Source: Oikopleura dioica (Eukaryota; Animalia; Chordata). Taken from it: DNA of 64,000 bases. The stretch is from assembly GCA_907165135.1 (NCBI GenBank), contig OU015568.1:5766001-5830000 (forward strand). Reading direction: 5' to 3'. Below are positions 53,543-58,167 of the stretch, in pieces (the stretch's first letter is position 1; each line of letters begins with the position of its first letter). A model generated the notes under the pieces. It was given only the letters and a program-made list of their open reading frames with translations. It ran no database searches and was not told the origin of the DNA. The translations under genes were made by a program, and so were the position numbers.

Positions 53543-56500
53543 ATGATCCAACCTTGGATGACTTGGAAACAAACATGCGCGGAGACTCAGAAAAGCATGC
53601 AGACAGCCTATGAGCACAACAAAGCATATGGCTTCGACGAGCGTTTGAAATCAAGGAAGACTTCTTTTCACCTCTTTTTTCAGGTTTCTGCCAAGACCAA
53701 GACCCAATCGCGATCGCCTATCAAGCGAAAAAGATTCACGAAGAATGCGTCCTGGTAATTTTTCGTCAAATTTATTTCCGACAGTTTTTTTTTCAGTACA
53801 ATCCTTGTGGTGGTGGAGCAGCGTCAATGAAGATTTCGGTCAATACTGAAAATGGCACGAATGGCACGAATGGCACGAATGGCACGAAATCACTGAAAAT
53901 GGCACGAAAACAGAGACACATTTTTTTGCGAATTAACCTTGAGGAATATTATGAATTAAACTGGAAAATTAACGGATTGATTTGAAACGATAGTTATTAA
54001 ACAACTTGAAAAGTTCATTAATCATGATCAAAATCAAAAAAAAAAAAATTTGAAACTTTTTTAAATTGACCGCAAATTCAGGCCCAAAGAGATTATTTTT
54101 TGAGTGAAATTCCTCAATTTTGCCATTGTCATTGATAAAAAATTGAAATAATAGTGATTTTAGCATAAATGATCAATTTTTCATTGAATACTCAAGTAAT
54201 AAACGCCCGCTCCGCGGGTTTAATGGGAGGAAACTCAAGGGTTGAAAAACAGGATGGTTGGACATTTCCCTTACACAAGCTACCACACATCCCTTACGGG
54301 CTACTAGACAATACAAGTGGCGCAACGGAGCACTCAGCGCCCCAGACAAAGATTCCTTTCGAGCAACTATCTAATGAATGCCTCTCATGCAAGATAAACT
54401 CAGAACAAAGGATTTTTGATTTTGATTTTATTTTTTTATCAATGTAGGTTACAGTATCAGTTTTATTCACAGAATATAAAGAAAAGATAAGGCAGTTTTA
54501 CAAGTTAGGCACAATAGGAGGAAAAATAATGTTGTGAAGAGGCAGTGAAAGCTGTTTAGTCAGAAGAATAATATTTTTTTTAACAAAGTCATTAGGAGCC
54601 ATGAATATAAATTTATTAATTTCGAGAATCCTCTCATACTTATCAATGACTTCCTTTCGGCGAAAATTGAAATCATCATTTTCAACAGAAAGGTTATTGT
54701 CATATTTGAAATCAAAGATGTTCTCAGCTGATTTGGCAAGACTATTAGCACCACAATTATAGAGTTGTTTCAACTTTCCATTAATGCTCTCACAACAATT
54801 ATTTGTAATATGAAATTCTCTAGAATTGAGGTGATAATAATAATTCCAACCATCCATCGATTCTTTTTTCAAATAATTGTCTTTAAAATATTTCATAAAT
54901 TTCCTGAATCCAGGCCTCAATTTCTTTGAAAAAGAATCGACATGAGTCGAGAGCGCCGACATAAAGTCAGAGTGAAAATTTGGGTCGAGAAAGGAAAGAC
55001 CTTTAAAAAGAAGATAAAACTCACAAACTTCAGAATTCGACGTAGGTGTCTCATTTGTGAATTCCATCAACTTTTTCTTGTATGATTTTACCTCGTGAAA
55101 AAAACACTGAGTTACGTGAGCATTGTACATTTCTTCCGCTGCTTTTTTGAGTCCCGGTTCAAAATCGAATACAAAATAACTTATTTTCAATTGTCTACCA
55201 AATCGAATTTGGAATCGATCATTCAAAATGGTAAATAATTGTTTGTAAGTCGAAGTAAGCCGATTTTTCATGAAACAGAAAATAACAGGAAATGCTCGCA
55301 TTTTCTCAGGATTTTTTTGACTAGGTAAAAGGATACATAAAATAAATAACTGAAGAAAATCTAATCCTCTCACCGGTTCCCAAGTTCCGTCTCCGAAAAC
55401 TCCCTGATGCTCATTTATTTGAAATCTTTCTTTCGATGAGTCATCTATGAGTTCCAATTCACTTTCCAGAAAAAACGCGGTCATATTTTCGTTCTCGAAT
55501 TGAAAAAAGGGTACAGATACATCTTTTTCCAAAACGGGATCGTAAACAAGCATCGTTTTTACTGAATCGGGAATTTCATCTTTAGAAGTGTGCGCTCCCG
55601 GGGCTCTCTGAATGGCTTTGTATGCGGATTCTCGAATTTTTCTCTTATCAAAATCAATTTCATTAGCTAAGCGACGACTCGAAATGGCTTTGTTAATATT
55701 AGATGTTTTGAAAATTGAAACAGTTTGATTTTGATGGGAAATTGCGGAATTTTGTTTTGTCAGTTGTCGAAATTTTTGATCGATAATTTTCATAGGAGGA
55801 GGTCCATCTGTACAAGTATGAGTATTTTCGCAAGAAATAACTTCATAGAAAGAAATATTGAAACGATCAGAAGATTGAAAATTGAAATCATTTTTCTTTC
55901 GTTCACACTCCTTTTCGACTCCTGTTTTCGGGTGTTTTCGCATGTACTTGTACTTAGCTGTAGTAATCATCGCTGGACATTTGAGCTTTGCAGAAGCCTT
56001 GCACTTCGAATTCGAGCAAGTCAAAGTGATTGTGGTTGCAGAGGTGGTGTTTCGATGGACGAGTTTGTATCTCTTTTTTCTGTCGCCGTGCTCGAACCAC
56101 CATGCGACTCCATCTTTTCTGTCGGATGTTGTGATCTCGATGAGAAATCCTTTTTCGTCGCTTCCTCTCTTTGCGTCAGTGTCAAGTTTTTTTATTTCTT
56201 TCAAAAAATCCATTTTTTGATTTTTTAGGAATGAGCAAAATGAAGAAAAAGTTCCCCTTATATGAGGAAATTTTGGTGAATCGGCATTCTATTTTTAGAA
56301 CTGAATCGTCCGGTATCGAACTAGAAAGACGGCAAGAAAAGGTGACAACTCTCACGCTCCATTCGAAAGAGCTATCTATTCGATTGAACTCGCTTCTCCA
56401 TCGCCAATTCATTTGAAAGTTCGCTGGGACTTTCGTGATGTCGTCCATGATATCAGCAGAAAATTATCAAATCTAATAGCCCCTTACCTCGGGGCTTCGC

Positions 56501-56992
56501 CCCTTAGGTCCTAAAATGCCGGGGTCTAGTCTAGGGTTACTTAGGGTTACCGAAGGTAACCCTAACTAACCCTAGCCTATCCCCCTCGGGTAAGTTTGTT
56601 CCGTCATTTTTGCAGGTGCCCCCTAACCCTAACCTTTATTCTAGCCAGTACTTGAAACTGGAAAAGTCTTGATCGAAGTTGGAGTCTTGGTAGAAAAGAC
56701 CTGGTGTGAGTGTTTCAATTCGGCGGGGCGGCTCACGGGCGCTACTTTATAACGTCTAGTAGGGCGGTGTGGTAGCCCCTCTCAAATTTTGTGTAAGGGA
56801 AATGTCCAATCTCCCGAAAAACAATAACAAAAAAGTCTCTAGAATTTTACTGAAAATGGCACGATGAAAAGACATGTTTTCGTGCCATTCGTGCCGTTCG
56901 TGCCATTCGTGCCATTCGTGCCATTTTCAGTACTGTCGAAGATTTCTTACTTCTTCTTTTTGATTGTGATCTTTCTTTTCTTCAAAAAATAA
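53543..56992 (+). CDS. Small Cys protein, family member 1, hydrophobic C-tail; last exon interrupted by nested transposons
   Basis: WKQTCAETQKSMQTAY...FCQDQDPIAIAYQAKKIHEECVL/YNPCGGGAASMKIS, then after 56946 YFFFLIVIFLFFKK*; colinear with the paralog at 57834-58167. Confidence 0.75.
54252..56815 (-). mobile_element. Full-length Mutator-like (MULE) DNA transposon, 2564 bp, 8-bp TSD
   Basis: ~100-bp imperfect TIRs (TTGGACATTTCCCTTACACAA...), TSD GAAAAACA at 54244-54251 and 56816-56823, intact transposase ORF. Confidence 0.92.
54498..56213 (-). CDS. MULE transposase, 571 aa
   Basis: N-terminal FLYWCH/WRKY-like Cys/His region, FGDGTW (D), FPVIFCFM, VFDFE (D), CFFH, TNNCCES (E). Confidence 0.92.
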   Translation of the reverse strand: MDFLKEIKKLDTDAKRGSDEKGFLIEITTSDRKDGVAWWFEHGDRKKRYKLVHRNTTSATTITLTCSNSKCKASAKLKCPAMITTAKYKYMRKHPKTGVEKECERKKNDFNFQSSDRFNISFYEVISCENTHTCTDGPPPMKIIDQKFRQLTKQNSAISHQNQTVSIFKTSNINKAISSRRLANEIDFDKRKIRESAYKAIQRAPGAHTSKDEIPDSVKTMLVYDPVLEKDVSVPFFQFENENMTAFFLESELELIDDSSKERFQINEHQGVFGDGTWEPVRGLDFLQLFILCILLPSQKNPEKMRAFPVIFCFMKNRLTSTYKQLFTILNDRFQIRFGRQLKISYFVFDFEPGLKKAAEEMYNAHVTQCFFHEVKSYKKKLMEFTNETPTSNSEVCEFYLLFKGLSFLDPNFHSDFMSALSTHVDSFSKKLRPGFRKFMKYFKDNYLKKESMDGWNYYYHLNSREFHITNNCCESINGKLKQLYNCGANSLAKSAENIFDFKYDNNLSVENDDFNFRRKEVIDKYERILEINKFIFMAPNDFVKKNIILLTKQLSLPLHNIIFPPIVPNL

Positions 56993-57102
56993 ATTCCCGA
57001 GAATAAAATCATCAAAGTCCATTTTCAGCAAATGATCCAAAAAAAATTAATGTTCCGTAAAAAGCAGTGTTAATTTTTCACTGCTTCTTCATTTCGTAAA
57101 AA

Positions 57103-57573
57103 ATGGCTCAGAGACCGGAATGCTTAACTTATCAAAACGACCTAGATAGCTTGTATCAAGCCTGGACTACTGCTTGTGAGATTCAAAGGTCATGTGGGGA
57201 AGATGGTGAGTAAGAAAATTAAATAGTTATGACTTCTGATAATAAGATTTCTGCATGGACAAACAAAATCTGCTGCAACTTGCTGATAAGTCGCTGTATA
57301 ATTGTACAATAGTAAGTTTTATCAAAATATTATCGTAGGGTGGGCAAAGCCTTTGGGGTTTCTTGCGGGAGGAGAGGGAGGCTAGAGGAGCTAGCATGTA
57401 ATTGGTTGATAGGCAGAATACTGAAATCTGATTGGCGGAAAGGATCAGATCTATCCCTATTGCGCCGATTATTGCTAACCCTAACCCTAGCCGACTACGA
57501 GAACTTTGCCCACCCTAAGACCATCTTTTTCAAAATAGTTTTTCAGAGATGGCCTTGCGATGACTTTACGTAA
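57103..57573 (+). CDS. Small Cys protein, family member 3 (divergent, may lack the tail)
   Basis: MAQRPECLTYQNDLDSLYQ...GED/DFCMDKQ...YNCTI/RWPCDDFT*; same intron phases as members 1 and 2. Confidence 0.5.
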
Positions 57574-57833: not shown

Positions 57834-58167
57834 ATGTCAGTCTGGGAAACTGCCTGTAACGTGCTTCAATCCACTGTTGATACTGCATACGATCTTGCTG
57901 AGACTGCTGGAAAGCAAGGAGTTGACGGTAAAAAACAGCAAGTATTTCTTGTTGAAAATTTTTAAGCTTTCTGCCTCGAAACAAGCAAAGAATTGTACAT
58001 GGGTCAGGCGAAGGCCGTCAATGCTGACTGCAAAATTGTAAGTTCCATCGTTTTTTTTGGCGCCGAAAAATAAATTCCTTCAGGACTGGCCCTGCTCTAG
58101 CGCTGACTCGATGAAGATCTCATTCCTTCTTCTTGCCATCTTTGCATTTCTGATGATGAAAAACTGA
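57834..58167 (+). CDS. Small Cys protein, family member 2, intact hydrophobic C-tail
   Basis: MSVWETACNVLQSTVDTAY...GVD/AFCLETSKELYMGQAKAVNADCKI/DWPCSSADSMKISFLLLAIFAFLMMKN*; an upstream signal exon is not resolved. Confidence 0.75.

Follow-up and report, generated by a model that had tools for sequence, protein, structure and literature searches.

Can a DNA transposon that lands inside a coding exon be spliced out of the transcript in frame, so that its insertion is at the same time the birth of an intron? The question is raised by a locus in a 64,000-nt stretch of the Oikopleura dioica genome (GenBank assembly GCA_907165135.1, contig OU015568.1, positions 5,766,001–5,830,000 of the forward strand; hereafter the window, in whose numbering positions are given), where the last exon of a three-exon gene, here called the host gene, is split by an outer miniature inverted-repeat transposable element (MITE) into which a second element, weakly resembling the Mutator-like elements (MULEs), has inserted. 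A preliminary description of the window had proposed the complex as a candidate nascent intron, with a donor supplied by the transposon and an acceptor supplied by the duplicated target. Comparison with homologous sequences establishes the structure of the complex with its target duplications and shows that the insertion is derived and the host gene constrained; the reading we favour is a more modest one. The locus probably carries a recent loss-of-function or hypomorphic insertion allele, in which the membrane tail of the encoded protein is removed and an intact neighbouring paralogue may make this removal tolerable.

The host gene and its nested insertion

The host gene lies on the forward strand. 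Exon 1 (53543–53642), defined by its open reading frame (ORF) and a GT donor at 53643, comprises 33 codons and one additional nucleotide and ends in phase 1, and is followed by a 71-nt exon 2 (53684–53754, FCQDQDPIAIAYQAKKIHEECVL) with the length and phase of the corresponding exon in the paralogue. Exon 3 is found in two portions, of which the left (53797–53837) contributes YNPCGGGAASMKI and the start of a serine codon, and the right (56947–56992) contributes the hydrophobic tail YFFFLIVIFLFFKK, with the stop codon at 56990–56992 and AATAAA motifs at 56988 and 57002. Joined without the insertion, the last exon would read YNPCGGGAASMKISYFFFLIVIFLFFKK, then stop. The intact paralogue (57834–58167, forward strand; exons 57834–57927, 57967–58037 and 58084–58167) has intron positions and phases identical to those of the host gene, the same 71-nt exon 2 and four aligned cysteines in common with it, and its SMKIS sequence and hydrophobic tail are uninterrupted, as had been recognized in the preliminary description.

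The outer element occupies positions 53838–56938 (forward strand, GGTCAATACTG...CAGTACTGTCG), measuring 3.1 kb with its nested guest and approximately 507 bp without it, the two arms being 53838–54251 on the left and 56816–56938 on the right. Its inverted ends (53841–53888 and 56888–56935) are 48 nt long, 96% complementary, and made of 9-nt AATGGCACG units. The target sequence AAGATTTC appears in two perfect forward-strand copies, one forming the last 8 nt of the left portion of exon 3 (53830–53837) and the other (56939–56946) containing the candidate acceptor AG at 56940–56941. A target duplication had thus been correctly perceived earlier, but its length is 8 bp and not the 9 bp then assigned, the ninth matching G being the last base of the element itself. 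All eight other full copies that were retrieved (L001–L008) begin with GGTCAA(T/G)ACTG, end with CAGTACTGTCG and are flanked by 8-bp target duplications, one of them with a single mismatch, and in DNA sequencing runs it is precisely at 53838 and 56938 that the sequences bordering other copies cease to match. The family numbers about 23 loci, with uninterrupted copies of 262–522 bp devoid of a long ORF. Short, non-coding, multi-copy, and equipped with inverted ends and target duplications, the outer element is by this comparison a member of a small, young MITE family. Its insertion is recent, because it differs little from its closest relative (L001, 507 bp; 5 mismatches and three gaps relative to the arms of the split copy) and because both target duplications are perfect. 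Among the nine full copies compared, only the one in the host gene resides in a demonstrable exon.

Two proposals regarding the origin of the outer element were discarded. The ends of hAT transposons are short inverted repeats beginning with a YARNG-type motif, and a hAT identity, considered on account of the 8-bp duplication, was rejected since the ends begin with GGTCAA and CGACAG in all copies and no partner was found. The surroundings of a related transposase on contig C3 were also examined for an autonomous partner of the MITE and yielded none, the MITE-like pieces there being separate, complete MITE copies rather than ends of the transposase-bearing element.

The inner element (54252–56815, reverse strand, 2564 bp) has ends GGATGGTTGGACATTTCCCTTACACAA forming imperfect inverted repeats of about 27 nt, of which 21 nt make up a perfect core (54258–54278 and 56789–56809), and is bordered by a perfect 8-bp target duplication, GAAAAACA, at 54244–54251 and 56816–56823. 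These bounds were drawn by aligning the split MITE with the uninterrupted 507-bp copy L001, and loose ends at 54251 and 56816 in the DNA runs agree with them. At full length it is a single-copy element in the genome. It contains an intact ORF of 571 amino acids (54498–56213, reverse strand), antisense to the host gene, which is weakly MULE-like, scoring 25.5 bits by hmmscan and 28.3 bits in a six-frame scan against Pfam PF10551 (cut-off 27.6), while its relatives within the genome score 25–27 bits. The element also combines terminal inverted repeats with a target duplication in the 8–11-bp range of MULEs. The preliminary description had applied the term MULE to the entire complex; on these scores the label fits the inner element only, and weakly so. 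The inner element is possibly autonomous.

Three relatives of this ORF, at about 50% identity, are located at C5:10116282–10117985, C3:264387–266066 and C4:5923490–5925187 of the same genome (G000), two of them intact and one with four stops, and each apparently single-copy. A word search of public proteins outside this genome returned no homologues, and exact-protein look-ups with the transposase and with the read-through ORF described below gave no match. Together the four ORFs would constitute a diverse, low-copy MULE-like family in O. dioica. One segment of the inner element (56444–56656, unstranded, about 200–210 bp, with a TTAGGG-like palindrome at 56521–56585) matches a short, very abundant repeat with at least 40 genomic matches at about 90% identity, and in one DNA run (X4) the summed contig depth (mean_word_depth) over the bin 56509–56669 reaches about 73,000. 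Since this repeat recurs upstream of the three related transposase ORFs, the segment has probably long belonged to the element family and is not a third fresh insertion, and the abundant repeat of about 200 bp may be a MITE derivative of the MULE-like family.

Derived state and reality of the insertion

The polarity of the insertion is set by a single orthologous sequence. One related ORF (P0001) was found by searching with a genomic open frame across exons 2–3, and it lies on a 730-bp ENA marine-metagenome contig (L033) from a relative diverged by about 15%. The contig is collinear with both flanks of the insertion (85% and 82% identity), contains the same three exons and extends as far as the beginning of the gene that follows. 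On this contig the last exon reads ...SAASMNISFLFLLLVIFFAFKK, then stop, so that the insertion point is uninterrupted here as it is in the paralogue. Because this contig is collinear on both sides and its last exon is unbroken, the comparison identifies the insertion as the derived state, within a real gene. Indeed, exon 1 is 87% identical between the two, with proportions of nonsynonymous (pN) and synonymous (pS) differences of 0.10 and 0.32 (pN/pS about 0.3), exon 2 is 91% identical (pN 0.02, pS 0.38, pN/pS about 0.05), and the introns are less conserved than the exons. To judge by this pattern in exons 1 and 2, the host gene is real and under purifying selection. The hydrophobic tail is retained in the metagenome orthologue (FLFLLLVIFFAFKK) as well as in the paralogue, with a mean hydropathy near 3 in the three homologues, host gene included, and on that comparison it is a conserved feature of the gene that looks like a tail anchor or a glycosylphosphatidylinositol (GPI) signal. 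The preliminary claim of a young nested DNA-transposon complex within a coding exon is thus borne out by the structure of the elements, their target duplications and the orthologue.

Could the insertion be an artefact of assembly, or a private feature of the one male sequenced that the population lacks? The reference was assembled from one individual with its haplotypes merged (PMC8008620), which leaves room for such a suspicion, and a same-lineage allele, whether empty or filled, was not found in other data apart from one study. DNA runs, a metagenome scan and a search of the assembly with the flanks revealed no same-lineage empty allele, and the assembly search for a second haplotype copy of either flank returned self matches only. 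Against this, a contig independently assembled from the short reads of another DNA run (X3) bridges the left junction (53676–53874) with no mismatches and at a depth of 10.3, compared with 11–13.5 in the single-copy flanks. Since it spans the junction at single-copy depth, the insertion is not an assembly artefact; it is real, and not a minor variant in the X3 sample. In addition, both nested elements carry perfect 8-bp duplications, and contigs of the inner element are also present in run X4, which belongs to another study. An artefactual or strictly individual insertion is accordingly an extremely improbable account of the locus.

Several further observations were made in the same searches. 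Run X4 contains two haplotypes over the flanks, with 2 versus 11 differences per 190 nt on the right (56957–57147) and 13 per 170 nt on the left (53557–53726). In this run the unique inner-element contigs occur at about the depth of one haplotype, with neither a junction contig nor an empty-site contig listed, and the insertion may be heterozygous there. The only metagenome match to the 22-nt empty-site sequence fell on a bacterial contig with unrelated flanks and was dismissed as a chance match, and an odd joint in run X10 that appears to go back upon itself rests on 22-nt partial matches and was treated as noise.

Splice signals and predicted products

In the sequence of events that we consider probable, an approximately 507-bp MITE, which now holds a nested and possibly autonomous MULE-like element, inserted itself by cut-and-paste transposition into the last coding exon in the Okinawa lineage of O. 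dioica and separated the SMKIS spacer from the C-terminal hydrophobic tail. By default the transcript would then run from exon 3 into the MITE, gain 48 element-encoded residues (VNTENGTNGTNGTNGTK...) and terminate at the stop codon at 53983–53985, possibly to be polyadenylated at ATTAAA or AATAAA signals in the left arm of the MITE. The preliminary description had likewise foreseen an unspliced NGT-repeat read-through that loses the tail, and the translation agrees with it. With the membrane tail lost, the allele would probably be null or hypomorphic, a loss that may be tolerated in the presence of the intact paralogue 0.9 kb downstream.

A very different fate would follow if the complex were spliced out precisely between the GT at 53839–53840 (tcg|GTCAAT, forward strand) and the AG at 56940–56941. 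Both dinucleotides are where the preliminary description had placed them and its arithmetic is correct, in that removal of 53839–56941 yields MKIS-IS-YFFF, adding two residues (IS), preserving frame and tail, and turning the complex into a functional 3.1-kb nascent intron. The signals themselves offer little encouragement. The donor has a rough score of 0.15, which ranks at the 42nd percentile among putative donors and at the 73rd among all GTs, and is therefore uninformative, unremarkable as it may be for this genome. The candidate acceptor scores −0.47 (62nd percentile of all AGs), and its context, ctgtcgaAG, is lacking the T-rich tract seen at six of six acceptors of the host gene, its orthologue and its paralogue. 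The best acceptor in the region is a TTTTCAG (56924–56930) only 11 nt further upstream, with a score of 2.20 at the 93rd percentile of all AGs. Nor is the existence of an in-frame route a distinguishing feature. When all G-start donors are paired with AG acceptors near the junctions, six canonical GT–AG pairs keep both frame and tail, and many more do so if the G(A/C/G)–AG introns of O. dioica are allowed, so that an in-frame GT–AG pair is what chance would provide.

The behaviour expected of the MITE family leads in the same direction. Although the outer element is a multi-copy transposon with the inverted ends and target duplications expected at the root of a transposon-derived intron, its own best signals (a GT at base 2 and a TTTTCAG 8 nt from the right end) leave behind 1+8+8 = 17 nt and so shift the frame wherever it inserts; the family is therefore not introner-like. 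In the orientation found in the host gene, it fails to provide the frame-neutral removal at any site that typifies introners. The in-frame route at this locus depends on an AG belonging to the target duplication of the host copy, and is thus peculiar to one target site, as illustrated by another copy (L035) whose duplication has no AG. The removed segment would, moreover, be 3.1 kb long and contain an antisense transposase gene, to be compared with a median intron of 49 bp in this species (PMC8008620).

Records of expression contribute little to either side. A search of sequencing runs for the stretch listed no RNA run. Over 4.8 kb, two oligo-dT RNA runs from 2026 under the same species label contributed 5 and 1 partial reads, the intact paralogue receiving none, and it may be that these runs represent another cryptic lineage or that both genes are silent. 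In a collection of 5.8 billion proteins, neither exon 1, exon 2 nor exon 3 was found besides the genomic ORF of the metagenome orthologue, the exons having been searched singly or as genomic open frames and the hypothetical splice products translated locally only. No cDNA-derived protein containing these exons was found, and the record holds no assembled cDNA of the gene, whatever its splicing.

Several considerations weigh against a simple loss of function, and some of them favour precise removal. The splice matrices were built from 264 kb of genome and are rough, noisy and contaminated with false sites, and since donors carry little information in the O. dioica genome, GTCAAT is not disqualified by its score. 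The species is also characterized by rapid intron turnover, with about 11% of its introns being non-canonical (PMC8008620), and the introners of Micromonas are an established precedent for combining an element-derived donor with a duplication-derived acceptor (PMC11282704). At its right end the MITE is predicted to fold into an RNA hairpin (56848–56932, forward strand) with 17-nt perfect arms (56848–56864 and 56916–56932), a minimum free energy of −36.9 kcal/mol and a z-score of −4.5. The TTTTCAG is hidden inside this predicted structure, and the AG of the duplication remains accessible just outside it. RNA structure that masks an upstream AG can shift acceptor choice downstream, and the hairpin could in this manner move the choice towards the in-frame AG. 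Under such a model the consensus acceptor of the MITE would be masked, the spliceosome, in a tunicate permissive towards introns, would take the first free AG, provided by the duplication, and the whole complex would be removed in frame with two residues added, a chain of events to which we assign a very low probability. When these points are set beside the poor acceptor context, its dependence on one target site, the 17 nt left by the signals of the family and the empty transcript record, a functional nascent intron at this locus is, in our judgement, highly unlikely.

The presence of a strong acceptor within the MITE raises another alternative, which is the main competitor of the preferred loss-of-function interpretation. 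Cryptic splicing via TTTTCAG might remove the element from some transcripts, rendering the allele leaky rather than null. Imprecise splicing of DNA transposons from exons is well established, as in the case of Tc1 in C. elegans and Ds and Mu in maize. The quality of this acceptor, the best in the region, speaks for such an outcome, as do three exonic GT donors (53807, 53810 and 53813) within the GGTGGTGG run that are in frame with it and would retain the tail (e.g., YNPCGVLSKISYFFF...). Used with the donor at 53839, TTTTCAG is out of frame, exactly as the preliminary description had cautioned, and would give a frameshifted product, SYCRRFLTSSF*. The exonic donors score low (−2.2, −1.3 and 0.2, respectively), the acceptor is sequestered in the predicted −36.9 kcal/mol hairpin, and an intron of 3.1 kb would again greatly exceed the genome median of 49 bp (PMC8008620). 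The generation of introns by transposon insertion has been reviewed (PMC3443670, PMC11282704). For the present allele we regard leaky cryptic splicing as unlikely, with a small but appreciable chance of being correct. Under the preferred loss-of-function reading, too, the consensus TTTTCAG in the inverted end would be the most likely acceptor if the spliceosome acts on the element at all, and in conjunction with the element's own donor it would append a frameshifted 10-residue tail. Because this most likely pairing gives a frameshift, we infer that nothing in its design makes the insertion an incipient intron.

The significance of the locus depends on which of these readings holds. Should in-frame removal be true, it would represent a dated and polarized birth of an intron from a DNA transposon in a chordate, with an empty orthologous site and an intact paralogue available for comparison, and would suggest a testable role for RNA structure in the choice of a new acceptor. 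It would also constitute a transposon-carrying intron, whose opposite strand encodes a possibly active transposase, caught at its birth in an animal. On present evidence the locus appears to be an ordinary young, probably deleterious insertion in a compact, transposon-rich genome, and its main use is as a candidate for those holding RNA of Okinawan O. dioica.

The surroundings of the locus and the other MITE copies offer some additional observations. A second copy of the outer MITE (L035:2210–2729, corresponding to G000:C4:13694509–13695028) shares the relative orientation of the copy in the host gene and is embedded in an open frame of 141 codons, and the ORF upstream of it enters the element and yields the same VNTENGTNGT... 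peptide; no Pfam match was found for this open frame and its flanks. In the opposite orientation, the MITE's own GT (CGACA|GTACTG) and TTTTCAG would leave 5+8+8 = 21 nt, which is frame-neutral anywhere, with the remnant open in two of three frames, and no copy of this orientation was found in a demonstrable exon. A different MITE family, with ends CCTGAGTAGAAAAC..., is represented 13 kb beyond the window (L009:840–1017, G000:C1:5843239–5843416) and has no bearing on the outer MITE. Directly downstream of the host gene is the start of a further gene, MAQRPECLTYQNDLDSLYQAW... (57104–57205 in the window, L033:662–730), whose position is conserved in the metagenome relative and which has the W..(T/A)C motif also present in the host gene and the paralogue. 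The three look like a small tandem family whose proteins contain cysteines and end in hydrophobic tails, and for which no Pfam or database relatives were found. The first intron of this downstream neighbour is about 340 nt, unusually long relative to the genome median of 49, and includes (57324–57529) a 26-nt, 85% inverted repeat (GGGTGGGCAAAG...CTTTGCCCACCC) and a CTAACCCTAACCCTAG stretch. A genome search found this inverted repeat to be single-copy, and it is not an obvious MITE.

Comparison with known systems

The two elements relate differently to the MULEs and their MITE derivatives. The inner ORF gives a borderline match to the MULE transposase domain and, as in MULEs, is intronless, the elements begin with GG, and the 8-bp duplications are at the low end of the MULE range. 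They depart from typical MULEs in the weakness of that match and in their short inverted ends; the word search outside this genome found no homologues, and the outer MITE has no end sequence in common with the inner element.

The introners of Micromonas and other protists (Huff et al. 2016; Gozashti et al. 2022, PMC9860276; PMC11282704) are the systems evoked by the nascent-intron proposal. The likeness lies in the presence, within coding sequence, of a non-autonomous DNA transposon that has inverted ends and is flanked by a target duplication and, on paper, in the recruitment of one splice site from each of two sources, the element and the duplicated target. Introners, in contrast, are short, exist in hundreds to thousands of genic copies and are splice-ready at any site, whereas the outer MITE is found at about 23 loci and leaves 17 nt. 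The in-frame route in the host gene requires a site-specific AG, and the supposed intron would be 3.1 kb long and carry another transposon.

Phylogenetically closer are the MITE-derived non-canonical introns of Fritillaria borealis, like O. dioica an appendicularian tunicate and a close relative. According to the account of Henriet et al. 2019 contained in PMC11282704 (follow-up study PMC13326754), genic MITEs in this species are removed by a permissive U2 spliceosome, with pairing of the inverted ends bringing the two intron ends close to each other. The Fritillaria introns are thousands of established, expressed introns with AG–AC or AG–AT ends, whereas here a single young insertion with hypothetical GT–AG sites is concerned.

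Imprecise splicing of Tc1 in C. elegans and of Ds, dSpm and Mu in maize was shown with cDNA. This demonstration at the transcript level sets them apart from the host locus, where splicing is hypothetical; in principle that locus could behave like these insertions, like introners or like the Fritillaria introns. They are alike in that in each case a cut-and-paste transposon resides in an exon with cryptic splice sites in or near its ends (for the mechanism see PMC3443670), and as in those systems the outcome may be a mixture of frameshifted and in-frame products from a leaky allele.

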